DNA of 64,000 nt from Convolutriloba macropyga. Lineage: Eukaryota. The notes under the pieces are model-generated. The model was given only the letters and a program-made list of their open reading frames with translations. It had not been told where the DNA came from and did no database searches. Location of the stretch: contig NC_134476.1 of the NCBI RefSeq assembly GCF_964194025.1, positions 61,752,001 through 61,816,000 on the forward strand. Reading direction: 5' to 3'. The translations under genes were made by a program, and so were the position numbers. Shown piece by piece: positions 10,158-53,291 of the stretch; within the stretch, counting starts at the first letter, position 1; each line of letters opens with the position of its first letter.

Positions 10158-11291
10158 CTAAAAGACACAACACTAGTTCAATCAGAGAAAAAAAACGCAT
10201 TGAAAGTTGACAAAAAGTTCTGATATGGTCATCTATTTAAACTGTGACGGCCTTTAACTTCGTAGTATTTCACCATTTTGACTTTGAGACTACTTTTCAC
10301 CACACTCTTCACATAGCAACAAGGGCGAAAAAAGTTATTTCATTTTTCGGTGCTATTTTAGTCGGTGTTTAACTTGAGTATTCATCAAAAGCAGAAAACA
10401 TCGCCATTTTAACTTGATTTATAATCACTCAAAACGTCAAAACCAACCATTAAAACTTAAGAAAAGAGAGAATACGACTCAGGATAGGCCAGCTTCGTGT
10501 TCATACTGCTTCAATTTAAATACAATCATTGGGGAAAATAAAAAGGAAACCCCAATAAGCATTCGAGATTTAAACTTGAGATGACAGCATTAATTGGTAT
10601 TCTTTCCAAGGTCGCTCTTTGTCTGTACCCGTAAACGTTATCGACTCCTAAAAGCGACTGCTACAAGTCTTCGAAGCATAACCGAATAACGTCGAGCAAA
10701 CTGCTCTCAAACTAGTGGGGGCTTCAAACTCTGAAGACCCACCCTTCACGCTATAAATTTGTCTCCAAAACAGTTTCGGTGAATCGCGTAAATAGGAGTG
10801 CTTTCCCTGTTTATCCCATTTTGAGGACAAATAGTCAAATGGGTCAGAAGAAAAATCGGACATGCGAAACATCGAATAAACATAGCTGGCAGATTGCCAG
10901 AAAATAGCCGCAATAGATTTGTAGATCGGCAGTCTAAAAAAACTAAAAAAGACAGACCAAAAAATTTTGTCTTTTCATTGAAGGCTGATCTGTTATAATT
11001 TGATTAAAAATCTGTATAAGTTATTGTTGCCTCTATTAGCTGATCTCAAATAACCTTCATTTAGAGTGACACACACCCACAAGTGAGGAAGTCATTTTTG
11101 AGAGTGAGGTAAGTCAAAAGTGACCAAAAATTAATCACGCACATGAACAAAAAAAACTCGCTCCACTAAGCGAAAAATGACGTCACACATGCAATTCAGT
11201 TGAAATTGCATGAACGAATGAACAAAAAGCAGATTTTAAATGGTTGTGACGTCATATGGTCGTAACAAAATCTTGACGACGAAATAAAAAA

Positions 11292-12917
11292 CATAGCAGG
11301 ACAAGTCCTAACGTACAATTCAAAGAATTTTCATTGACTAAATAGAAAAACTAGACCTATAATGGACTATGAGTAAACTGAGAAAACCATTCTAAATTAG
11401 AACAAAAAATTAAAAATTAAACAGAAAATCAATGTCAAAATGCCACATGTGAACAAAAAAAACCACTAGCGAGAAATGAAAATTTAATTCAAACAAAAAA
11501 CAAGGCCTAGAATGAGCTGATAATGGATTGGAAAAACCATTCAGAAAAAAATCCGATCCAAAAAATCGAAAAAACAGTAAAAATCAGAGTGAAATTGCCG
11601 CATGTGAACAAAAAACCACTACCGAATTTTTGTTCAAACACCGTTTTCTCACTCTACTTTAAAATTAGAGCAAAACAATTCACGCCGCAAAACCACTCGC
11701 TTTTTCTCTCCATTTCCTGTTTCGGCGTGACCAAAATCACTACTCCAATTTGACTTCAAAAATCATGAAAATGTGTGAACAGATCTTAAAAAAAAACATA
11801 GCCGGAAGAATTCCGGAAACGACTCGAAGTGAAAATCAATATAAACGCCATCCAACTACTCATCAAACAAAACGTGCCTTCACTAGTTTATGATTATCTT
11901 GAAACAAAGTCATGAAACAAAATAGTAAAAACAATAAAATCAAATCTGTTAAAATATGATAAAAAATCTGATCAAATTTTGTTATAAATTGAGATCCCGA
12001 AAAAATATCTCTGCCAAAATAACTTCATCAAAACAACTAGTACTTACAAAAACCACTTATGTGAATATTGAGAAAAATACTTTGGGCTAAAATTATGAAA
12101 AAAATAGCTCAAACAACTTTCACTGAAAAACTGGAAAAAATTACTAAATTCTTTAATATTTCAAAAACATATAAATCCAAAGAAAAATTCCCTTCAGCCA
12201 AAAGGGTATCCAGATGCTCGCAAAACAATAGGCAAGTCATAATAGGCAAAGAAACTTAGCAAAAAACAGAAAAAAAAAGAAAAACTGCAAAAAATTAAGA
12301 AAAATAGTTCCAAATTTCGCTATTTTTTGTCATATTCCTCAACAAAAAAATGATTCTCACCCACAAAACTGTAACCAATTGTTATCATAAAATTGCTCAA
12401 GTAGAAGGGGTTTCTTCAATACCCATTTGAACCAGTAAAACAAAATAATCGTCAAGAAAACGCAAAAATTAGCCCGAAAATCAGCAAAATACATTAAAAA
12501 CCTCCGAATTATCATAAAATTCATATGAATTTCCAGAAACCTTCAAACCACTCCCGAAACCAGTCTAAAATTAAAACAAAATCATAATCAAACCTCTGAA
12601 CCAAAATAAATGAAAAAAACTGCTTTAAAATGCCGCACGTGAACGAAAAAATTTCGCTCGCTTAGAGAAAATTTTTTCACACATCAATTTCTCGCTCTCT
12701 CAAAAACAGCGGTATGAACAAAAACCACTCTCTTTTCGCTCCGCTCTTCACTTTTGTTCAGCAGCAAAATCACTCCAAATTTTTTCACGCGTTTCATTTC
12801 CCGCTTCAAAAATCACTCCAATAAAATTGATTAAAAAAAAAGGACTTCTCCAATACTCCTCTTCGAGTCGTAAAAAAGACAGCGCCCCAATACAATTCAA
12901 ATTCTTTGAATTGTAAA
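11292..12917 (-). mobile_element. HINE family D nested in A
   Basis: catag-AGGAC-aa-GTCCT; perfect 15-bp ATIR TACAATTCAAAGAAT (11314) / ATTCTTTGAATTGTA (12901). Confidence 0.78.
11797..12873 (-). mobile_element. HINE family C nested in D
   Basis: catag-CCGGAA-gaa-TTCCGG; perfect 11-bp ATIR ACGACTCGAAG (11819) / CTTCGAGTCGT (12861); empty site seen at 39010 and 44540. Confidence 0.78.
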
Positions 12918-13232
12918 AAACCAAGAGAAGGCCAATAATAGCCCCAGCTATCGTTGTACGGCTATTAATAAAGACCACAGGACTAATGTAATTGCTACAA
13001 AATTTGTCTGAGAGCAATCGTACGCTTGATATTCTTAACTACACAGCACTTATACAGAGGTGTTTGTATTTATACCACTAACCTTTTATGCAAAGTCAAG
13101 GGAAAATTTATGGAAAAAGAAGCTCTAAAGCGGCCCCTCACACAGGCTTTCAGCCTTTTGGTGCTCGCGCGGTATACATGAATGATGACTGTATTCTTTG
13201 TATATCGCAAACGAATTTATTATTATTATTAC

Positions 13233-13829: not shown

Positions 13830-16800
13830 CAAAAATTACTAATCACATCCTCGGAACTGTCTGGCTCAAAAACTAAACCAAAGCACGAAAAGGTTGAAAC
13901 CAAGACAACAAAAAAAATCTTATGAAAAGGCTAAAATAAAATGTAAAAATTTTTCCGTAGCAATTTAACATATCATTTTTAACTTAACAAACAGTTTCGA
14001 CTTTGGGATGGGACACCCAGCTGAGCCCATAACACAAACTATACCAGCTTGGGAACCATCTGTGTGCGCACACAATCTTAATTTACAATCGCTTGTCAAG
14101 TCAATCCAGAACTGGTCAAGCGATATTTTTCAAGAAAATGGTCAAGCGATATTTTTGCATAACAAACACTCACAAGTCTACAACAAATTTTCAGCCCTTT
14201 TATCCAGAGTAATTAAAAACTATCTATAAGAAAAGAAAAACTTCGAAACTAGAAAACTGAAAGATGTCCAAAAAAACTGAAAAAAAAACTGAGGTCAAAA
14301 CTCCATTTCTTAAAAAATTCTTCAAAAATTAATCCAACCTCTGTCCAATTGGTCCAATGAAGCATGTCGAACAGTTTACGCTGAAAACAAAAACTTCAGG
14401 CACAAAATACTCGCAACAGGCATCAAAAACTCGCAACATAGCCTGCAGACTGCCGGAAAAGAGCCGCTTGTGGCCCTCCATGGAATTGAAACAACCAAAG
14501 AAAGAAGATAGACAGATTGACCAACAGTCCTTTAATATATCACTAGACTTTCTGGGTCAGATTCGGATTGTCATTTTAATGAGACACATACGCTCTATAA
14601 GGAAAAAGCCCTATTAGAGCTTTTTCAAAATAAATATTCGAAATCAAAAACTCAAGACTCTAATACTCACGAATTAGGGTATATACGTGTGACACTACTT
14701 AGATGTGCACTATTGATCTTTAACTCGTAAATTTTCATACAAATTAAAGTTCATTAAAAGAGTTCAGAAGTCATTTTTTAGTGAGGTAAATCACGCAAAT
14801 GACATAAAAGCAGAACAAATGACTTCAAGCGCACAAATTATAGCTGCAAAGCAGAAGTCACTAAAATAGAAAAAGTCAAGGGTCGCAAGAATCATCGACG
14901 GATACGTTGAATTAAAAAAGACCACGATGTCCCCAATAATAGCTGCCATTGCTTCGCGGCTATTAAAATTCAAAAGGCAAAATTTCAGGTAAAAGAGGTC
15001 ACATCAACTATAATCTCACCTTTGTAAAAAATAGACCACGTATGTCCAAAATATTAATTGATTGGACCGATATTCTAACAGAAAGACAACTCAATCTGCA
15101 CGCGGGTCAAAAACGTTAAAAAACTCCAAAACGTAGAGTAACGCGTTGATTTTTTAAATCTAATTCTCTAGCTCTCGCGCGAAGAAAAGCCTCAACAAGA
15201 TTTAGTAGCCTGTTCTCTGACTTTATTTTCTTTTGGTTGACCTAAAAACTTGCCTTCACGTGCGGCATTGACTTTTGCATCCTGTTTAAATAAAATTCTA
15301 CCAATCATCGAACCTAGCCGGAACAATCCGGAAAGTAGTCGACTTGGCCACATACTACAAATAAAACAACCGCTAAAACAAAACCGAAAAAATCTGCAAA
15401 AACTACAATTCACATCCTCGCAATTTTTTGGCTCAAAAATTAAATCAAAGCACGAAAAGGTTGAAACCAAGACAACAAAAAAAATCTTACGAGAAAAGGC
15501 TGAAAAAAAAATTAAGTGAAAATTTTTCCGTAGCAATTTTAATATATCATTTTTAACTTAACAAACAGTTTCTACTTTGGGATAGTGTCTCCATACACCC
15601 AGCCGAGCCATAACACAAACTATACCAGCGAACCATCTGTGTGCACAAACAAAATCTTAATTTACAATCGCTTGTCAAGTCAATCCAGATTAAAACTGTC
15701 AAGCGATATTTTGCCTAACAAAACCCACAAGTCTACAACAAATTTTCAGCCCTTTTATCCAGAGTAAATAAAATTATCTATAAAGAAAGAAAACCTTCAA
15801 AACTAGCGAACTAAAAGACGACAAAAATTTTTAAAAAAAACCGAGGTGAAAACTCCGTCGTTAATTCTTACAAAACATTCCAAAAAAATTAATTCATTCT
15901 GTGTCCAATTGGTCCCATAAAACATGTTGGACACTTAACGCAAAACAAAAACTTAAGACGCAAGATACTCTCCAAATTTATCAAAAACTCGCAACTAAGC
16001 CAGCAGATTGACGGAAAATAGCCGCGATAGTCACTTGAGCCCTTCCATCGAATTGCAACAACTAAAGACATTAGATAAACAGACTGACCACCAGTCCTTC
16101 AATAGACCACTGGACTTTTTGTGTTAGATTCGGATTGTCATTTTTATGAGACATATACGCTCTATAAGGAAAACGCCCTAATAGAGCTTTTTCAAAACTA
16201 AAACTCGAAATCAAAAACTCAAGACACTTATACTCAAGAATTAGGGATACGTTTCGCACTACTTAGATGCGCACTATTGATCTTTAACTAGTAAATTTTC
16301 AAAAAAATTAAAGTTCATTAAGTGAGTTCAGACGTCATTTTTTAGCGAGGTAAATCACGGAAATGACATAAAAGCAGAACAAATGAATTCAAGCGCACAA
16401 ATTTAAGCTGCGAAGCAGAAGTCACTGAAATAGAAAAAGTCAATGGTCGCAAGAATCATCGACCAAGACGTTGAATTAAAAAAGACCACGATGTCCCCAA
16501 TAATAGCTGCCATTGCTTCGCGGCTAATAAAATTCAAAAGGCAAAAATTCAGGTAAAAGAGGTCACATCAACTATAACCTCACCTTTGTAAAAATTAGAC
16601 CTCGTATGTCCAAAATTTTAATTGATTGGACCGATATTCTAACAGAAAGACAACTCAATCTGCACGCGGGTCAAAAACGTTAAAAACTCCAAAACGTAGA
16701 GTAACGCGTTGGTTTTTTAAATCTACTTCTCTAGCTCTCGCGCGAAGAAAAGCCTCAACAAGATTTAGTAGCCTGTTCTCTGACTTTATTTTCATTTGGT

Positions 16801-18605
16801 TGACCTAAACACTTGCCTTCACGTGCGGAATTGACTTTTGCATCCTGTTTAAGTAAAATTTTACCAATCATCGAACCTAGCCGGAACAATCCGGAAAGTA
16901 GTCGACTTGGCCACATACTACAAATAAAAAACAACCGCTGAAACAAAACCGAAAAAATCTGCAAAAAATACAATTCACATCCTCGGAATTTTTTGGCTCA
17001 AAAATTAAATCAAAGCACGAAAAGGTTGAAACCAAGACAACAAAAAAAATCTTACGAAAGGCTGAAATAAAATTTAGTGAAAATTTTTCCGTAGCAATTT
17101 TAATATATCATTTTTAACTTAACAAACAGTTTCTACTTTGGGATAGTGTCTCCATACACCCAGCTGAGCCATAGCACAAACTATACCAGCGAACCATCTG
17201 TGTGCACAAACAAAATCTTAATTTACAATCGCTTGTCAAGTCAATCCAGAACAAAACTGTCAAGCGATATTTTGCCTAACAAAACCCACAAGTCTACAAC
17301 AAATTTTCAGCCCTTTAATCCAGAGTAAATAAAATTATCTATAAAGAAAGAAAACCTTCAAAACTCGCGAACTAAAAGACGACAAAAATTTTAAAAAAAA
17401 ACCGAGGTGAAAACTCCGTCCTTAACTCTTACAAAACATTCCAAAAAAATTAATTCATTCTGATAAGACGACAAAAATTTTTTAAAAAAACCGAGGTCAA
17501 AACTCCGTCGTTAATTCTTACAAAACATTCCATAAAAAATTAATTCATTCTGTTCCAATTCGTCCCATAAAACATGTTGAACACTTAACGCAAAACAAAA
17601 ACTGAAGACGCAAGATACTCTCCAAATTTATCAAAAACTCGCAACAAAGCCAGCAGATTGCCGGAAAATAGCCGCGATAGTCGCTTGAGCCCTTCCATCG
17701 AATTGCAACAACTAAAGACATTAGATAAACAGACTGACCACCAGTCCTTCAATAGACCACTGGACTTTTTGTGTTAGATTCGGACTGTCATTTTTATGAG
17801 ACATATACGCTCTATAAGGAAAACGCCCTAATAGAGCTTTTTCAAAAACTAAAACTCGAAATCAAAAACTCAAGACACTTATACTCAAGAATTAGGGATA
17901 CGTTTCGCACTACTTAGATGCGCACTATTGATCTTTAACTAGTAAATTTTCAAAAAAATTAAAGTTCATTAAGTGAGTTCAGACGTCATTTTTTAGCGAG
18001 GTAAATCACGGAAATGACATAAAAGCAGAACAAATGACTTCAAGCGCACAAATTTAAGCTGCGAAGCAGAAGCCACTGAAATAGAAAAAGTCAATGGTCG
18101 CAAGAATCATCGACCAAGACGTTGAATTAAAAAAGACCACCATGTCCCCAATAGTAGCTGCCATCGCTTCGCGGCTAATAAAATTCAAAAGAGGCAACAT
18201 TTCAGGTAAAAGAGGTCACATCAACTATAATCTCCCCTTTGTAAAAAATAGACCTCGTATGTCCAAAATTTTATTTGATTGGACCGATATTCTAACATAA
18301 AGACAACTCAAAATGCACGCGGGTCAAAAACGTTGTAAAACTCCAAAACGTAGAGTAACGCGTTAGTTTTTAAATCAACTTCTCTAGCTCTTGCGCCAAG
18401 AAAAGCCTCAACCAGATTTAGTAGCCTTTTCTCTGACTTTATTTTCATCTGGTTGACCTAAACACTTGCCTTCACGTGCGGCATTGACTTTTGCATCCTG
18501 TTTAAATGACAATTACCAATCAACGAACATAGCCGGAACACTCCGGAAAGTAGTCGACTTGGCCAAATACTACAAATAAAAAAAACAACCGCTAAACAAA
18601 ACAAA
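13830..18605. repeat. Three-unit tandem array (~1.56-1.65 kb unit), each unit with a ~530-bp family-A HINE
   Basis: gcttcgcggct at ~14951, ~16515, ~18166; third unit has an internal ~85-bp duplication near 17375-17550. Confidence 0.92.
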
Positions 18606-34308: not shown

Positions 34309-36091
34309 GACTTTTTACTGAAGAATCGCTATTCATCCTTAGCAATTTTTTACATATTGACACTGTTCTGAATACCTTAAAGTAAAAAATTTTACCACGC
34401 TTGAGGCGATAAAAATATTTCTTTAATCAGTTTGTTTTTACGAAATTGATATATTTCTAGGACTTGTGTCCACTGACAGGTGTCTACTGATTTTTTTACT
34501 GAAAATTTTTAACGGATATTTAGGACAAAGAAAAGGAGTTCGCAGCTCTTCAAAAACACTCAATTCAGAACCATTAAAATAAAATTTGGTAACTTGAGCT
34601 GTAACCAAATTTTGAGGATTAACGAAACTATCTCTTAATAACTACTTGTATAAATTTGCTAAACAAAAATAAAAAAATATATAAAAGAAGGTTTAAATTA
34701 CCAGTTTTGAATTCTATTGAGTTTGTATGAGAAACAAATTAAGCTAATTTTGATATGGTTTAATATTAAGCTTGGAAAGACCTTTTCATGCTCATTTAAA
34801 AAAGCTTTAAACCAATTTTTACGCTCAATGAGTACAGTTTTAAATCACTGACATGCTCAAAAATGCGCATTGAAGTAATCTATTCCGAAATGGTATAATA
34901 TTACAAACCTTCTTTCTTATGCTCAATTAAGGAAGCTACATTTAAAGCGCGCATTAAAGAAGACACAATTGCAGACTACAGATACACTTAATGCGAAAAG
35001 ATACCCAATCTGAGGAAAATTGCACTACAAGACTGGTCACATAATTTCCAACTTGAAAGTGTCTCAATTTCGCACAAACCTAGGAACCACTTGTGCGAAA
35101 TAAGCTGCCAAACTTGACCCTAATGTTGCTCATTTTATGTATCTATTTTCCGAGCGAGTTTTACGAAGGCGGATATTTTACCTGTTTGTTTTTGAGGACG
35201 AAAAGTCAAACGGGTCAGACGAAAAATCGGTCAAGCACAAAATCGCATAAAAACTACCACAGGACTAATATAACTGCTACAACTTCGTTTGAGCGCAATT
35301 AAAAATATGTTCTTTCAATACATTACTCTGTACCCAATCTGCAATTTTACGCGATCGAAAGCAAATGATGGAACCTATAATTCGGCAGACAAACAAGCAT
35401 GTCTCATAACAAAACCACCACTCACCTAACAAGTCTCCATTTATGGTTCCTTGTGCTCAACGGAAAACTTCTACAACCAGAAAAATTAATTTTGGAACTG
35501 CAAACGGATATAAAAGTGATCAATCATATCAGTAATTTATAAATCTTTTAAGAAATTCAAGTAGTGATTTATTTAATAGCAGCAAACCATTTGACAATTT
35601 ACATATGTACATTGAGTTTGATGAAATCAATTAAATTAAATACGGATAACGAGACAAAACAATAATTAAGGAAGAGTGTGTGTGCATCACAAGCTGAGAT
35701 ATACAGGTGTAAATTGACAAGATTAGCAGAGATAGAACACAAAATTGAAATATTAACAACAATAGATGTACAGATGGAAATCTGAGAACAACAAAAAGGG
35801 TTGTTTGGTTAATGATTTCGAAGAAGATATCTAATTAATGAGATCGAGCAAGCTTCATATGTGAGACTTCAGCATTTGTTTAAAATGTTCAGATTGCTGG
35901 TTCACATTTATTTTCCTTGAAAAAATGCGTGACCGGGAATAGAATAATGCTAATATAAGCACACAAAGTAGAGAATAGAAGCAAGAAGGTAGATAACTAA
36001 ACAACACTTTCACTTAGACTGAACCTTGTTCATATTGCGAATACCTATGACTACTGAAGCCGTCTCTATTTTTCTGGAGAGAAGATTGTAT

Positions 36092-38559: not shown

Positions 38560-39095
38560 AAAACATAGCCGGCAGATTGCCCAAAATAGCCGTAATAGAC
38601 GCTATTGGTTTTCCATGGAATTGAAAAAACTGAAGAAATGAGATAGACAGATTGACGACCAGTCCTTCAATAGACCACTAGACTTTTTTGGGTAGATTCC
38701 GACAGCCAATTTTATGAGACACATACGCTCTATAAGGAAAAAGCCCCAATACAGCTTTTTCAAAATTAATAATCAAAATCGAAAACTCATGACTCTTATA
38801 CTCAAGAATTAGGGCATATAGGTTTGGCACTACTTAGATGCACACTATTGATCTTTAACTAGTAAACGTTCAAGCAATGTTCACTCTACTTTAAAATTAG
38901 AGTTAAAAAATTTAACACCGCAAACCAGTCGCTTTTTCGCTCCACTTTCTGTTTCGGCGTCACCAAAAGCATTACTGCAATTTGACTTCAAAAATCATGA
39001 AAAAGCCTGAACAGATCTTAAAAAAAACAGCGCCCCAATAAAATTCAGACTCTTTGAATTGTAATAAAAACCACGCCCAAAAAACCCCTAATAAA
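38560..39095 (-). mobile_element. HINE family A copy containing a family D fragment
   Basis: aaacatagccggcagattgcccaaaatagccg; body matches 14440-14730; D end at 39025-39065. Confidence 0.65.
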
Positions 39096-43240: not shown

Positions 43241-43569
43241 GTCGCTGAAGTTAACCCGAATTAAACCCGGTAGTCCATTAAATGCATTATTACATTTAGT
43301 GATCTGAAATTTGGCAAAAAATATGACATGATTGACAGCTCTACTGTCAATAAAATGTACATTTGAAATTTGCGCTTTAACGAATTCCATTCAGTTAACC
43401 AGTAACTGTTAAACTCAACTAAATTTTAACAGTTTAAATTGTTCTGCACAATTTTCACTTCGTTCAAGAGTAATTAAAAAGACGCCCTTCTACAATTAAA
43501 ATTCTTTGAATTATAAAAAACCACGATGAGACAAAGAATAGCCTGGCCCTAGCTTCGCGGCTATTAATA

Positions 43570-44645
43570 AAAAAAGCTGTCAGATTGTCAGAAAATAGAC
43601 TCAAAAGATAAAAGAAACTGACCAAAAAAGTAATTTCTTTTTTATTAAAGGCTGAGAAGCCCTCAAATACCCTTCAAATAGAGTGCCCCGCACTCTGAAT
43701 TAAATTAAAGAAAAGTCAAGTTCAGAGTGAGGAAGTCATTTGTGAGATTGAGTCACGTGTGACCAAAATCTTAGACACGCCAATGTACAAAAAAATCGCT
43801 CCAGTCGTCACGCACGCAATTCAGCTGAAATTGCATGAACGAATGAGCAAAAAGAAGATTTAAAGTGATTTTGACACCATATGGTCGTAACAAATAACCT
43901 GTTGACAAAATATCGCAGATATATTTTTATATTTTAATGCTTTACGATTTAATATTTTAATGTTTTACATATAATATTTTACGATTTAATGTTTTAAGAT
44001 TACAAAGAGGGATTAATACCGCAATTAATCTGACGCACAATTCTTTATGGAACGCGCTTCCGTCACATATATTTTCCGGTGAAAAGCAGTCTTCATTTTT
44101 CAACTTTCAGTTTATAGAAAATAACTGACCGGAATTTCCAAACAATGCACCGCCTTTTCGTCCGCTACAATCAAAAGTATGTTTCACGCGAACAATATAT
44201 CAACCTAGAAAAAGTGAAATCTGATAATAAAAAAGGGTTAATTTACCCAAATTTGGTACCGGTAGACACCCGTAATGCATGAATGGATTAGGAAAACCAT
44301 TCACAACATACCAAAAATCGAAAACAGTAAAAATTAATGTCAAAATGCCGCATGTGAACAAAAAACCACAAGCGAGAAAGCAAAATTTAATTTTAAAAAA
44401 TTCTCACTAAACTTTAAAATTAATGAAAAAATTTAACTCCACAAAACCACTCGCTTTTTCGCTGCATTTCTGGTTTCGGCATGACCAAAATCATCATTTC
44501 AATTTGACTTCAAAAATCATGAAAATGTGTGTGATCAGATCTTTAAAAAAAGACAGCGCCCCAATACTATTCAAATTCTTTGAGCTGTAAAAAACCAAGA
44601 GAAGGCCAATAAGAGCCCCAGCTATCGCTTTGCGTCTACATTAAA
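43570..44645 (-). mobile_element. HINE family A containing family D
   Basis: Body matches 10920-11285 (A) and 11520-11790 (D); stacked D then A ends at 44550-44643. Confidence 0.7.
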
Positions 44646-44938: not shown

Positions 44939-45715
44939 TCACTCTTTTTCAGCCAGCTTTTCTTTTCTGCCTCCCCTGATGAGACCAGTTCTTCTGGCCG
45001 CAATCAGACCGACCTTTCGTCCAGGTGGAGTTGAACGCTTAACAGTACTTGGAGATCCAATATGCTGGTGGTTACCTCCACCGTGCGGGTGCTCCACAGG
45101 GTTCATCGCCACACCTCTCACAACTGGCCAGCACTTTCTCTTAGCCTTGAATTTATGGTATGCGCGACCTGCCTTCAACAGAGGCTTCTCAGTACGTCCA
45201 CCACCAGCAACAATTCCAATCATGGCTCTGTTCTTTGAAGACACAATCTTTTTAAGACCAGAAGGCAGTCTGATTCGTGTCTTTTGGGTGTCGGTGTTAT
45301 GCGAGATTACTGCACAAAAGTCACCCGATGCCCTCGCCAACCTACCGCGATCACCTGTTTTCTCTTCAACTGAACAGACTAAAGTACCCTCTGGGATGTT
45401 GCCAATAGGCAGGACATTTCCAGTTGTCAAAGCTGCTTTCTTTCCCGCATAAATGTACTGGCCAGTAAATAACCCTTCGGAAGCAATGAACAGCTCCTTC
45501 CTCTTTTTGAACTTGTATGGATCTCTGAACTCCACGACAGCCAAGGGGGCTCCTCGTCCAGGGTCGTGGATGATATCCTTGACCAGTCCTCGCATGTAAC
45601 CCTTGCGTTCACTGTAGTCCAGGTTTCTCAGCTTGGGAACACCCTTTCGATGTTTCACGTGGGCTTTGAAAATGGAGCCAGCTCCCTTTCGCTGAGCTCG
45701 AATGACTCGCCCCAT
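44939..45715 (-). CDS. RPL8: 60S ribosomal protein L8 (uL2), uninterrupted CDS
   Basis: [16 protein letters not shown]...[12 protein letters not shown]...[22 protein letters not shown]; 258 aa. Confidence 0.99.
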
Positions 45716-50908: not shown

Positions 50909-53291
50909 TCTTCACTACGATTATTAACACTTATCTGAAAAACACCAGTCAGTCTAACTCAGCAATAAACACTCTAAACTAACTCACACCAAATCTCTAA
51001 ACTAACTTCAAAATTGAACAAAAATTCATCTGACGGAGAAAAAATACCATGAGCAATTGCTAATTGAAATATGTTGCTTTGACGAAACGATCGAAATAAT
51101 GAAAGACAACAGTACAGCACGAGAAAACTACAAAAGTTTGAATTGCTGCAAAAGTCGAAAAAGCTTTAAAGCATTAAAGTTCGTTTCAATTTAAAGTAAC
51201 AGATGCGGACATAAAGGAAGAATTCCCTTAAAAAAGTGATTAAAAGCTTTCCTCGCATAACTAATACTTGAACATTGGAATAATTCTGGAAACGACTCGA
51301 AGTACGTAAACAAATTGCCTTTCAAATGACTATTATCTGGCTACAGAACGGCTAGTATCTCCTGACATTAACAACAATCTTAATTCAGATACCAAAGATC
51401 AGTACTCATCATTAAAAAAATAAAGAAATTTCAACTAATTTTTCAGATAGTAAAAGTACAAATACAGAAAACGTTTTTTCATGCAAGCTAAGCTATTTAT
51501 CTGACAACACAAATTTGGTCAAGACTTTTAATCTCTATTTATGAAAATCAACAGAAAAGCTCGAATGAAATTAAAAAATTGTATCAAATTGATATTTTTG
51601 TCGAATTCCATTAAAGAAGCGGCTTTGTATCAATCTAGCTTAACTCAATTTGCAGTAGACAGTACCTATAAGCATTTGACTTCAATTGAGTTACTACTAA
51701 ACTGATTAAAGTATTACAGAGGGCCAAAAATTTTAGATAAAACTTCAAAAACAGTGAATTAATGATGTGTAATGTTAGCCATAAGCAGCATTTTATCAAT
51801 TTATCTCATCAATCATTAACTGATTTTTTTAAAATTTGATGCCAATTCTTTTTTTTCAGAACTTTTGATGCCATTTGTTGTTAACTTGATTTTTTAATGG
51901 TCGGTATTAGCTTATCCCATTTTTGAGGACGATAAGTTGAAAGTGTCGGACTAAAAATTGCTAAAGCATAAAAACCACATAAAAAACCACCACAGGACTA
52001 ATATAAATAAGACAACACTTCATTTGAGAGCAGTTAATCACAAAATAGCTTAAGTTTGAAACTTAATCGAAACAAGAAGACCACTTAAATCCTGTCTCGA
52101 AAGCACGAAGTCATCGAACAAAAAGCGTAAACACAAATTTAAAAAAGAGCAGGAAAAACAATAAAAATTGCAGTTCTCATTGTTATTTTGTTTTGCTAGG
52201 GAACAATAATTTGGCAGCTTGATCTCCAAACAGAAACTTAAAAAAATGCTAGGAAATTTACTCACATTTTTAAGGTCCTCAAAACCACTATTGTGTTGCT
52301 TAATAGATACAGAATTCCGTTGATGCAGTTAATACACTAAAAATGCGTTTGTAAAAATTCAAATTCGTTCTTTTAATTTGTTCGTCCAGCTTTATTATTA
52401 ACATTAATTATATACGACTCCCATATTGACCTCGAAAGCGTTTGGAGTTATCTTAAATGACTTCAATCAAGTCAATGAAGTCATTAAGAGAGTATGGTAA
52501 GTCAGTTATGATCAGAAAACTATAGTGTGGTAGGTAGTGTTGATCACACACGTCAGCTTATCAAACTCACGCCAATTAGTTTAAAAAATGACCCAAACTA
52601 GCTAGAGAGTAGTGAAATAGCGGAATGAGATCATTTGTTCAGAAGTTTGCGGCGTGAAAAAAATGTAAAATGACAAAGAGCGTCAGACGACAAAACGAAA
52701 ACCAAGAACACCGCAATATAGCTACGCTCAGCTTCGCATTTATAAAAACAAACCTTTGAGAAGTTTGCATTGTTCGCATTTTTAAACTAACCGAAAACGA
52801 ATTTACTATTATTTTTGTCAGTTACCAATTACCAAGCAGTTATACTATACCTCATAAACATACGTAACGCTGAGGTACTGTAACGTCACAAAAAAAGAAA
52901 TCGTTCGAAAATTTGAATCAGACGAAATAGAAGTTATATACAGAAAAAGATAGGTCCCTAACATTAAAATTTATCTGACAACGCACAAATTTTCAAGAAC
53001 TGACTGACGACTTGCTACGAAAACTCGCAATATTTAAAGGTAAATACACTGACATAACATTGACGCAAAAGATCGACCGGACGTCACTCATCTCATTAAA
53101 GTACGCCAGATTGTACCACTTTTCAAAATTGAAACCACGCTTCGTCAAAACGATATATTCACATTCAATAGGAACAGTTTAAATTTTCACAAACATCTTT
53201 TGGGGATTTTAATGATTCACTTGAGCTATTTGATATGATAAAAACGGCTGGATAGAAACAATAAACTCAATTAAATCAGAGCACAATTTAT

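Follow-up and report, generated by a model that had tools for sequence, protein, structure and literature searches.

A four-deep nest of Helentron-like elements in Convolutriloba macropyga and the poly-T tract near the host 5' end as a probable insertion address

Introduction

How Helitron-like elements choose their targets is poorly understood beyond 'AT' or 'TT'. A 64,000-nucleotide stretch of the Convolutriloba macropyga genome (NC_134476.1, positions 61,752,001 to 61,816,000, forward strand; referred to below as the window, in whose own numbering all positions are given) contains four elements lying one inside another, and raises the question of whether such a nest is an accident of insertion or reflects a preferred address within the resident elements. 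The genome constitutes a natural experiment on this question, since its insertions run into the thousands and can be compared both with matching sites that are empty and with internal T-runs as controls.

Results

Four elements are nested in the same orientation

Direct reading of the sequence at 10678-13018 gave the order B[A[D[C]]], as the initial annotation had proposed, and the nest is confirmed. The strand on which that annotation had read the nest did not stand, since the elements read 5' to 3' on the minus strand. With the minus strand as the meaningful orientation, the stacked 'right ends' are therefore 5' ends. On the plus strand, the left ends lie at approximately 10678 for B (CATAACC...), 10881 for A, 11292 for D and 11797 for C, and those of A, D and C all start with CATAGC followed by a short hairpin. 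The right ends mirror this order, with C ending at 12871 (...CTTCGAGTCGT), D at 12914/5 (...TTTGAATTGT(A)), A at 12966-12969 (...CGGCTATTAAT) and B at approximately 13018 (...GAGAGCAAT). In all four pairs, the right terminus is matched in reverse complement by 8-14 nt beside the left-end hairpin. As had been claimed, each inner element sits in a T-run of its host, 30-50 nt from the host 5' end, at all four levels. This T-run is called the pad below, and the 5' terminal segment beyond it the head. The nest comprises the following features.

10678-10880, minus strand: 3' part of element B, with the terminus ...GGTTATG, a 5-bp 3' hairpin, the subterminal repeat TGAGAGCA, and a body reaching the B pad
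10881-11291, minus strand: 3' part of element A, with a CTATG terminus, a 6-bp 3' hairpin (CTGGCA/TGCCAG), the subterminal repeat AATAGCCG, and the body end GACGACGAAAT plus an A-run as the left half of the A pad
11292-11796, minus strand: 3' part of element D, with a CTATG terminus, the 3' hairpin AGGAC/GTCCT, the subterminal repeat TACAATTCAAAGAA, and the body end CAGATCTT plus an A-run as the left half of the D pad
11797-12871, minus strand: element C, complete (1,075 bp), with the 3' end CTATG, a CCGGAA/TTCCGG hairpin and the subterminal repeat ACGACTCGAAG
12833-12841, minus strand: C's own pad, empty
12842-12871, minus strand: 5' head of C, 30 nt
12872-12877, minus strand: right half of the D pad
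12878-12915, minus strand: 5' head of D, with an 11-bp hairpin holding the terminal repeat
12916-12920, minus strand: right half of the A pad
12921-12969, minus strand: 5' head of A, with the hairpin AATAGCC/GGCTATT
12970-12972, minus strand: right half of the B pad
12970-13018, after the pad half, minus strand: 5' head of B, with the terminal repeat TGCTCTCA and a hairpin

Over 40 full-length copies of element C share both of its ends (91-97% identity), and the D body contains an internal duplication of ~150 bp. The hairpin of the D head scored -8 kcal/mol (z -5.4), and at many loci the A head follows on a D head. An ORF search of the nest region gave no ORF longer than 89 aa, and the region gave no Rfam match; an RNA gene or coding sequence in the nest was rejected accordingly.

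End architecture of the Helentron/HINE type

The families have a common ground plan. On the 5' side, a T-run is followed by the 5' terminus, whose inverted repeat lies within a hairpin or next to one, then by a spacer of 10-16 nt that often begins with (T)ATTGG, and by the pad, a poly-T tract of about 7-10 T. On the 3' side, a non-coding T-rich body leads to the second, subterminal repeat copy and, beyond it, to a 3' hairpin, a CTATG or TTATG terminus and a T-run. The repeats shared by the 5' terminus and the 3' subterminal region are ACGACTCGAAG in C, TACAATTCAAAGAA in D, AATAGCCG in A and TGCTCTCA in B, and E and F are built likewise.

Several of the features that define HINEs (Helentron-associated interspersed elements, the non-autonomous Helentrons) were found. 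The inverted repeat is about 11-15 nt long and stands at or near the 5' end and, subterminally, about 25-30 nt inside the 3' end. A 3' palindrome is present, the stems of C, D and A (4-6 bp) stopping 5 nt before the terminus and the 5-bp stem of the B tail being placed further in; the A-like 3' hairpin is conserved across 8,561 copies. A 5' hairpin is also present, with a stem of 11 bp in D, 7 bp in A and 6+4 bp in B, and only a weak 4-bp stem in C. The Helentron/HINE-type end architecture suggested at the outset is thus borne out by the 5' repeat and hairpin, the subterminal 3' repeat and hairpin, and the T-run targets. The DNA features of Helitron2 are present as well (asymmetric terminal inverted repeats, 3' hairpin and T target); what sets it apart from Helentrons is a Rep-Hel protein lacking an endonuclease, and the elements may be of either kind.

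Two other assignments were rejected. Canonical Helitrons (Helitron1) have a 5' TC, a 3' CTRR preceded by a hairpin some 11 nt upstream, and an A-T insertion site, whereas the 3' end observed here is CTATG, the targets are homopolymer T-runs, and the 5' ends read ACGAC, (T)ACAAT, TTAATAGCC and others. In a cut-and-paste MITE, the repeat would not be terminal at one end only, with the other copy about 25-30 nt inside behind a hairpin; moreover, a fixed-length TSD is absent, and the orientation of D in A-like pads is absolute (5,717 vs 0), which cut-and-paste transposition does not predict.

The genome contains 90 Helitron_like_N matches and OTU-Rep-PIF1 ORFs of 2,468-2,515 aa. In the 20 kb around three Rep ORFs and at 12 further Rep loci, scanning revealed neither a CTATG-type tail nor a matching repeat. 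HINEs are defined by a partner Helentron (Rep-Hel-endonuclease) sharing their ends, and none with the same termini was found at the Rep loci scanned. No endonuclease domain was detected in the scanned part of the OTU-Rep-PIF1 ORFs. The Rep loci gave weak matches to the C interior (65-67%, about 100 bp), with no termini in common. A 'hairpin+ACTATG' candidate lying 1.7 kb downstream of one Rep ORF was dropped, as it came without a matching 5' repeat. Because no autonomous element with these termini was found, the Helentron label and the involvement of a transposase are drawn from the architecture, by which the region appears to be a four-deep, same-orientation nest of non-autonomous elements of the Helentron/Helitron2 kind.

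Empty sites exist for each level

The empty sites named in the initial annotation were confirmed by blastn of the region against the window and by direct reading. The window contains the following empty copies.

44282-44589, minus strand: D without C, with the pad (44545-44551) uninterrupted; this D copy itself lies in an A-type pad
44590-44638, minus strand: A head hosting that D copy, the reference empty site spanning 44282-44638
38868-39063: second copy of D without C
35177-35299, minus strand: B without A, an uninterrupted B copy with its pad at about 35249-35253
~14880-14967, minus strand: A2-type body end, pad (14914-14919) and head without D
52635-52734: F-type element with an empty pad

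In the empty B copy, the head is contiguous with the body (35249-35299). The A2 head type of 14880-14967 also adjoins D at loci L033 and L052. Genome-wide, 3,191 A/F pads and 5,092 D pads are empty.

Empty D pads mostly contain 7-9 A, and filled pads contain about 7-10 on one side and 5-7 on the other. With the A/T run roughly doubled at filled sites, the description of the target as an A/T run stood, but that of insertion with no TSD is limited to non-homopolymer sequence. The insertions examined were all in A/T runs, and duplication of non-homopolymer sequence was not seen; the doubled run would fit either Ts carried by the element or duplication of a homopolymer target.

Insertions that are outside pads or merely adjacent were observed at loci L044, L032 and L046 and at window 43567-43575, the arrangement at the last position and at L032 being a head-to-tail adjacency rather than a pad insertion.

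Pad occupancy differs between families

The genome holds 9,079 occurrences of the D head 15-mer and none of its reversed control, indicating that the nest pattern is far beyond chance. Tail motifs behaved likewise, with abundant genome copies (9,749 of the D 18-mer, 8,561 of the A-like 20-mer and 2,593 of C) and 0 for the reversed controls. In counts of exact patterns, which cover the listed families, a pad motif preceded about 64% of the 9,749 D tails and about 67% of the 2,593 C tails. By the same counts, D tails lay in A-like pads (5,717), D pads (407) and C pads (69); C tails in D pads (922), A-like pads (720) and C pads (about 105); and the 8,561 A-like tails in D pads (105), A-like pads (about 100) and C pads (about 25-35).

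In a position-ordered sample of sequence-checked D heads, 28 of 30 (about 93%) had an A-like head after them and a matching host body before them. All 10 of the sampled C copies were in D or C pads, and at locus L003 a C variant lies directly in an E pad. C occupies pads of D, C, A, E, F and A2, D occupies pads of A, A2, E, F, G, D and C, and the A-like, D and C families are nested within one another in every order. Of the A-like copies (families A, A2, E, F and G), about 3% are in pads and about 97% elsewhere. D and C are near-obligate pad dwellers, and the A-like families are generalists. The proposal that every family prefers pads thus held for D and C (about 64-67% in pads) and only to a modest degree for the A-like families; with only about 3% of A-like copies in pads, the preference is therefore real but family-dependent.

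As the proposed landing-pad role implies, pad use was far above that of equally long internal T-runs in the same hosts. The internal A6-8 run of D contains 7 insertions. The internal A9 run of C, equal in length to the C pad, contains 1, compared with 144 in the pad. The internal A10 run of E contains 13, of which about 8 are clean A-like or C-type insertions and none is D (0/13). No inverted D copy was found in A-like pads, compared with 5,717 direct ones. For the A-like families, the excess in pads was 4-fold to >25-fold over internal runs and about 1-4-fold over the genome-wide null of long T-runs (~3% observed vs ~1-2% expected), pads constituting ~1-2% of T-runs of 7-8 T or more.

Inner elements have moved independently of their hosts

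The inner ends were found to move independently, as had been anticipated: C occurs in six pad types and D in seven, and both orders were found. D parts are ~92% identical between host families, as compared with ~78% for the host parts, and short and long D variants are both present in A, A2, E and F hosts. In the D tree, the host label changed 11 times against a shuffled mean of 10.6, i.e. there was no clustering by host, and two cross-host clades had an SH-aLRT of 95; resolution of this tree is poor, with 11 of 15 inner branches below 80% support. D has entered at least five host families independently. A single ancient composite was rejected in view of the D length variants across hosts, the contrast in identity and the D tree. 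A fixed order, in which C would lie only in D and D only in A, was likewise rejected, since the reverse orders exist.

Dispersed copies of composites, which the initial annotation had suggested looking for, proved abundant at unrelated loci, making it plausible that composites move as units; repeated insertion into young host copies is the alternative. In E[D] copies, the host and D parts are similarly young, and the junction A-run lengths are tight for D-in-E and C-in-D. Pad copy numbers are inflated to some extent by amplification of whole composites. At loci L007/L009, three C bodies accompany two C heads, and recombination, therefore, also reshapes the arrays.

Discussion

We consider it probable that the window contains a nest of HINE-like rolling-circle elements in which insertion is strongly drawn to the pads of resident elements, almost the only address used by D and C. 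The same arrangement could in principle result from passenger amplification only, i.e. from a few chance insertions near host 5' ends, followed by multiplication of the composites with no target choice. The abundance of composites at unrelated loci, with young and similar host parts, the narrow junction A-run lengths of D-in-E and C-in-D, and the little-resolved D tree would agree with this. Such an origin is nevertheless unlikely, given at least 14 inner-by-host combinations in both orders with the pad used in all, D parts far more alike than their hosts, and both D length variants in four host families. The A-like insertions in D pads are dispersed, belong to three different tail subtypes and divide the A-run at 3-12 A, which fits independent events, and equally long internal runs hold 1-13 insertions. 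In addition, D and C outside pads are rare (no more than 2 of 30), which is unexpected from random insertion and later composite amplification.

It is very unlikely that T-run length explains the pattern, with a transposase preferring the longest T-runs regardless of hairpin and host element. About 2,000 D tails lie at E-type (GACGAAGT) pad motifs, as estimated from the first 100 matches listed, yet the internal A10 run of E, longer than the A7 pad, has no D insertions; some 35 A-like tails lie at E-type pad motifs as against the 8 or so in that run. The internal A9 run of C is of pad length and nearly empty, and the 64-67% of D and C tails in pads contrast with the small share of pads among long runs. 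What this account does accommodate is that outermost A-like elements lie in ordinary short T/A runs, that their pad share is near the share of pads among runs of at least 7-8 T, and that the E internal run collects A-like or C-type insertions at all. Least probable of all is an origin with no insertion, in which head stacks and body arrays would form by rolling-circle read-through, template switching or unequal recombination between T-runs. Read-through is the explanation of Helitron tandem arrays in the published passages on such arrays (PMC4067079, PMC5148889), and it would suit the tandem D-derived arrays with a 463-bp period, the partial D repeats at locus L050, the surplus C body at L007/L009, and the head-to-tail adjacencies in the window and at L032. 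Nesting is, however, perfect in the window and at 28 of the 30 sampled loci, where each head has its matching tail and the host body lies on the side where it should. Exact empty sites are available for all levels, and the mismatched 5'/3' pairs and truncated inner units predicted by read-through are exceptional here.

If, as we prefer, the pad is a favoured address, new copies would integrate strand-specifically into T-runs, as is usual in the class, with the A-like families (A, A2, E, F and G) inserting mostly outside pads. Pad insertion would spare both host ends and keep a matched 5'/3' pair at each composite level; with the host ends intact, every level would therefore be remobilisable in principle. 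Repeated rounds would generate matryoshkas, as well as self-nests that appear as body arrays followed by 5' head stacks. The enzyme would presumably be an HUH Rep/helicase transposase acting on single-stranded DNA, and we suggest, tentatively, that the host 5' hairpin, at a fixed distance from the T-tract, might recruit or position it.

The bacterial HUH elements IS200/IS605 and IS91 insert strand-specifically into single-stranded DNA next to a short sequence, with subterminal hairpins helping to read the target. They resemble the present elements in that the target resembles the flank of the element's own end, and differ in being prokaryotic and in using tetra- or pentanucleotide targets. Helentrons are not known to read their targets by DNA guidance, and the IS200/IS605 analogy serves here as a hypothesis for the preference for a hairpin plus T-tract. 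Pursuing it, D and C could conceivably be obligate hyperparasites of rolling-circle elements, whose target, a 5' hairpin with a T-tract 10-16 nt downstream, would be read partly by sequence carried on the incoming element; we regard this as rather doubtful. Comparison by eye of the D and C termini with pad flanks gave only a loose similarity (the C repeat ACGAC..CGAA vs GACGACGAA beside A-like pads), which is not evidence of a guide. If the proposal were true, one transposase could serve both generalist and homing non-autonomous families, and homing would build self-assembling, remobilisable composites, together with body and head arrays that seed satellite DNA.

Among known systems, the elements of the nest are most like HINE/DINE-1, described by Thomas, Vadnagara & Pritham 2014 (PMC4067079), and Cg_HINE of the Pacific oyster (PMC7492417). 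The likeness to HINE/DINE-1 extends to non-coding sequence, an inverted repeat of 11-15 nt at or near the 5' end with a subterminal 3' copy, a second short repeat producing a 5' hairpin, a short palindrome near the 3' terminus, and T-rich targets, the elements being bordered by strings of T on either side. The lack of an ordinary TSD in HINEs is matched here as far as non-homopolymer sequence goes. The simple repeat just past the 5' hairpin is a microsatellite in DINE-1 and Cg_HINE and poly-T here. The HINE literature compared describes nested and shuffled loci in general terms, without a fixed address, near-exclusive families or hierarchies in every order.

In FoHeli, a Helitron2 of Fusarium oxysporum, a single body is preceded by a stack of 5' pieces (31, 65, 73 or 85 nt), which was explained as self-insertion near the 5' end and later mobilisation that started at the outer 5' end (PMC5148889, Chellapan, van Dam et al. 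2016). Those stacks mostly duplicate the same family in few copies, matched outer 3' parts were not reported, and site preference was not tested. In contrast, the thousands of nests described here are complete, with outer bodies, and combine unrelated families in every order, and their T-tract was tested against internal controls. Tandem arrays and side-by-side insertions of canonical Helitrons are known from bat, maize and Drosophila DINE-TR1, according to the accounts of arrays in PMC4067079 and PMC5148889. As far as those accounts go, both systems form abutting rolling-circle clusters and head-to-tail arrays able to seed satellites, but the Helitron arrays involve terminator bypass and truncated inner copies, whereas body arrays here come with head stacks, as self-nesting predicts.

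The finding accounts for how composites become layered while several of their end pairs stay intact, which opens a way to new chimeric families, and for the stacked 5' termini of Helitron2 and Helentron elements. It also accounts for pseudo-tandem arrays, bodies and then heads, that resemble emerging satellites, without terminator bypass. With the preferred address being a T-tract whose distance from a 5' hairpin is fixed, a structural model of single-strand target choice becomes directly testable. Automatic repeat annotation will mis-define such families, and the finding bears on the poorly characterised DNA-transposon fraction of acoel genomes.

Anatomy of the Nested Elements

The window is AT-rich (~35% GC), with more A than T on the forward strand along its whole length (positive AT skew). 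On direct reading, the nest (~10678-13018) holds on the forward strand four left ends and, in mirror order, four right ends of the non-coding Helentron-like (HINE-type) families A, B, C and D, arranged as B[A[D[C]]].

Ends of the nested elements (forward-strand reading)
~10678: left end of B, begins CATAACC
10881: left end of A, begins CATAGC
11292: left end of D, begins CATAGC
11797: left end of C, begins CATAGC
12871: right end of C
12915: right end of D
12969: right end of A
13018: right end of B

Behind each left-end start come a short hairpin and a motif of 8-14 nt, in that order, and each right end terminates in the reverse complement of its own left-end motif. The end coordinates proposed in the initial annotation were accurate on re-reading, and its stacked "right ends" are 5' ends, the elements reading 5' to 3' on the minus strand. 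On that strand, the 5' end piece (head) runs from a terminus with an inverted repeat in or beside a hairpin, through a spacer, to a poly-T tract (the pad, an A-run on the forward strand) and the body; on the 3' side of the body come a second, subterminal repeat copy, a 3' hairpin and CTATG (TTATG in B). The pad lies 30 nt from the element's own 5' terminus in C, 37 nt in D, ~49 nt in A and ~46 nt in B, the latter three being the distances of C, D and A from the 5' termini of their hosts. DNA folding gave an 11-bp 5' hairpin in D (z -5.4), stems of 6-7 bp in the heads of A and B, a weak one in that of C, and 3' hairpins of 4-6 bp in C, D and A, ending 5 nt short of the terminus. The aligned heads of six families displayed a common layout of T-run, terminus with hairpin, (T)ATTGG-like motif, ~10-13 nt and T-run. 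Neither an ORF longer than 89 aa nor an Rfam match was found in the nest region.

The 3' hairpin CATAGCYGGCAGATTGCCRG, with 8,561 copies genome-wide, is common to A, E and F, three of the A-like families (A, A2, E, F and G). The pad-side body end in these three is GACGAA(AT/GT/AC) followed by an A-run, and their bodies and heads differ widely despite the common hairpin. A similar motif, GCC(G/A)CA(T/C)GTGAAC (CACGCACATGAAC in A), occurs inside the bodies of A, D (twice) and C with an A-rich tract behind it (broken by G in C), so that the families have a common internal module though their ends differ.

Sites of the internal motif
11130-11160
11440-11470
11590-11620
12625-12650

The initial annotation had also reported copies of D, A and B without their inner elements. 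These were seen again by blastn of the nest region against the window, by direct reading and with the part library.

Empty sites in the window
44282-44589: D without C
38868-39063: D without C
35177-35299: B without A
near 14880-14967: A-type element without D
52635-52734: F-type element with empty pad

Genome-wide, exact patterns found 5,092 empty (uninterrupted) D pads and 3,191 empty A and F pads.

Insertion into the Pad

The genome searched comprised 1.18 Gb in 4,694 contigs. It contains more than 40 full-length copies of C with 91-97% identity and identical start and stop bases; C moves by its own ends. Eight of ten fetched C loci lie in a D pad, and the others (L003 and L007/L009) lie in the pad of another C; at L003, the pad that directly holds the outer C-type element belongs to an E-type one. 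A 15-mer of the D head occurs 9,079 times, as compared with 0 for the reversed control. Among the first 30 D heads in order along contig C1, taken as an unbiased sample, the pad was uninterrupted in 20, held a C-type element in 9 and was deleted in 1. An A-like head immediately follows the D head in 28 of these 30 loci. The D tail (3' end piece) fell inside the fetched flank in 22, all with a host-type body end before it, and in the 18 loci used for the identity comparison and tree below, the body before the D tail matches the host head on the far side.

Junctions were counted genome-wide with exact patterns, whose reversed controls gave 0-7 matches, and 0 for all tail-bearing junction patterns.

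Tails found in each kind of pad
D tails (total 9,749): A-like pads 5,717; D pads 407; C pads 69
C tails (total 2,593): A-like pads 720; D pads 922 (head-side count 1,521); C pads ~105
A-like tails (total 8,561): A-like pads ~100; D pads 105; C pads ~25-35

By exact pattern, 64% of D tails and 67% of C tails lie in pads. Since the exact 6-8-base flank motif is kept in only ~2/3 of sampled copies, these shares correspond to nearly all copies, as the 28 of 30 sampled loci show. The A-like families are the opposite, with ~97% outside pads. All nine inner/host combinations of the three superfamilies are present; the nesting seen in the window therefore follows no fixed hierarchy.

Other T-runs in the same elements served as controls. 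The internal A6-8 run of D after CATGTGAAC, as frequent in the D sample as the exact pad motif, received 7 A-like or C tails, as compared with 105 and 922 at the D pad. The internal A9 run of C, equal in length to the C pad, carried 1 insertion versus 144 at the pad. The internal A10 run of E, longer than the A7 pad of E, gave 13 matches (~8 clean), none of them D, while E-type pads precede ~35 A-like tails and an estimated ~2,000 D tails, extrapolated from the share of the E-type motif among the first 100 matches listed. Pads thus outdo T-runs of equal or greater length elsewhere in these elements, which shows that they bear a mark beyond run length. Inverted D was found in A-like pads 0 times, as compared with 5,717 in direct orientation, and all nested pairs in all loci and all copies in the window have a single orientation. 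Taking the long-run null from the window (A/T runs of at least 7 at ~2.3 per kb), the ~20,000 pads represent ~1-2% of long A/T runs, an enrichment of 30-90-fold for D and C and ~1-4-fold for A-like elements. The proposal that the T-run pad is favored by other families therefore holds for D and C, and fails as an equal rule for all, given the A-like figures.

Independent Entry and Probable Movement of Composites

D parts are 90-92% identical across host families, as within a family, whereas host parts drop from ~90% identity within a family to ~78% between families. A maximum-likelihood tree of 18 D copies showed no clustering by host (11 changes versus a shuffled mean of 10.6), with two host-mixing clades at SH-aLRT 95 and most branches unresolved. 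The hosts A, A2, E and F each contain both short (~360 bp) and long (~510 bp) D variants. We therefore reject a single ancestral composite; D entered the homologous pad repeatedly, at least five times and probably at least nine. A-like insertions in D pads occur on all large contigs, with three tail subtypes and the run split at 3-12 A, a pattern as expected of independent events. Nesting as A[D[C]], seen in the window, recurs at locus L007, where the A part is only 82% and the C part 95% identical to those of the window; this pair therefore nested independently and is not one moved composite. At unrelated loci, E[D] copies have equally young E and D parts and narrow junction run lengths. The copy numbers surely also include composites amplified as wholes, alongside independent insertions.

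Target Duplication, Exceptions and Arrays

The initial annotation held that insertion leaves no target site duplication (TSD). No ordinary TSD was seen; filled pads have about twice as many A as empty pads, so that a homopolymer duplication is possible. Published HINEs are reported to carry terminal Ts (PMC4067079).

A non-pad insertion at L044:1496-2008 puts the 5' head of D[C] against an A body, ~293 bp in and beside an A5 run; the same A copy carries a second D in its pad. At L032, L046, L054 and window 43567-43575, elements abut or neighbor another element's 5' terminus outside the pad. The arrangement at window 43455-43605 is head to tail and not nested: behind a D head, an A2-type head and an A-run comes, with nothing between, the 3' tail of another A-type element, so T-runs beyond a 5' terminus serve as targets too.

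Self-nests comprise the 407 D-in-D cases, often in runs one body length apart, and C-in-C. The array at L009:1501-4047 and L007:1-2715 falls one head short of pure nesting: behind three successive C bodies (units 1-1045, 1-1045 and 1-1075) come two C heads, then one D head and one A head. Unlike self-nests, which have the full body period, the partial D tandem array at C1:8,799,275-8,802,557 (D heads at a 461-463 bp period) and the repeats of partial D body and head at L050:1205-1540 are satellite-like and derive from part of D.

Matches to the part library across the 64-kb window all lie on one strand. Along the first 11 Mb of C1, D-head strands form long blocks (26 runs versus 47 expected, z -4.45), which could be due to the way genes or introns point, to the direction of replication, or simply to strand-specific insertion into T-rich copies already present. 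The same strand of the window also bears CATAGC/CATAGT tails with hairpins from further families or subfamilies, at 18528 (hairpin CCGGA/TCCGG, a different repeat), 53295 and 38563. Among the elements lies an intact intronless uL2/RPL8 ORF of 258 aa (window 44939-45715, minus strand; 571 bits against PDB chain 11he_L8). It falls in a 90%-identity cluster in which the named members are from the acoel Symsagittifera roscoffensis, a species with several uL2-like paralogues, and may have arisen by retrocopying or belong to a duplicated family.

Discussion

Strict strand specificity, T-run targets, hairpin ends and the lack of an ordinary TSD fit single-strand HUH-type rolling-circle transposition, which has been established in Helitrons and is inferred for Helentrons (PMC4067079, PMC5148889). 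In the aligned heads, pads have one visible feature in common: a 5' hairpin whose distance from the T-tract stays at 10-16 nt. This host hairpin would presumably be where the transposase itself binds the resident element. D and C may owe their much higher specificity to another partner transposase, or to target-reading sequences that they carry themselves.

The anatomy is like that of HINE/DINE-1 and oyster Cg_HINE, including the simple repeat right behind the 5' hairpin (PMC4067079, PMC7492417). Stacked 5' termini of 31-85 nt, with a self-insertion model, are described for Fusarium Helitron2 (PMC5148889), and oysters have shuffled and nested Helentron loci (PMC12628747). The Symsagittifera roscoffensis genome paper handles repeats only summarily (PMC9911081), and we found no description of Helitron-like elements of that species. 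The literature likewise yielded no control-tested intra-element insertion address, no families confined to one and no nests of several families in all orders.

Uninterrupted ORFs of 2,468-2,515 aa encode an OTU protease, a Helitron Rep and a PIF1 helicase (L023-L028).

Loci of the OTU-Rep-PIF1 ORFs
C4:51.23-51.25 Mb
C2:35.74-35.76 Mb
C10:43.50-43.52 Mb

Copies on C4 and C2 have flanking ~1.2 kb tandem repeats, and C10 has at least five such Rep matches within 400 kb. The search for Rep-helicase ORFs flanked by the ends of these families, as the initial annotation had envisaged, linked no Helentron with such ends at the Rep loci examined, which leaves the HINE membership of the families incomplete.

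The finding is of interest to transposon specialists and ordinary to others. Self-nesting of D in D and C in C builds arrays of bodies followed by stacks of heads. Insertion into the pad spares both ends of the host, so that composites, which the initial annotation suggested might move as units, may stay mobilizable at each level.
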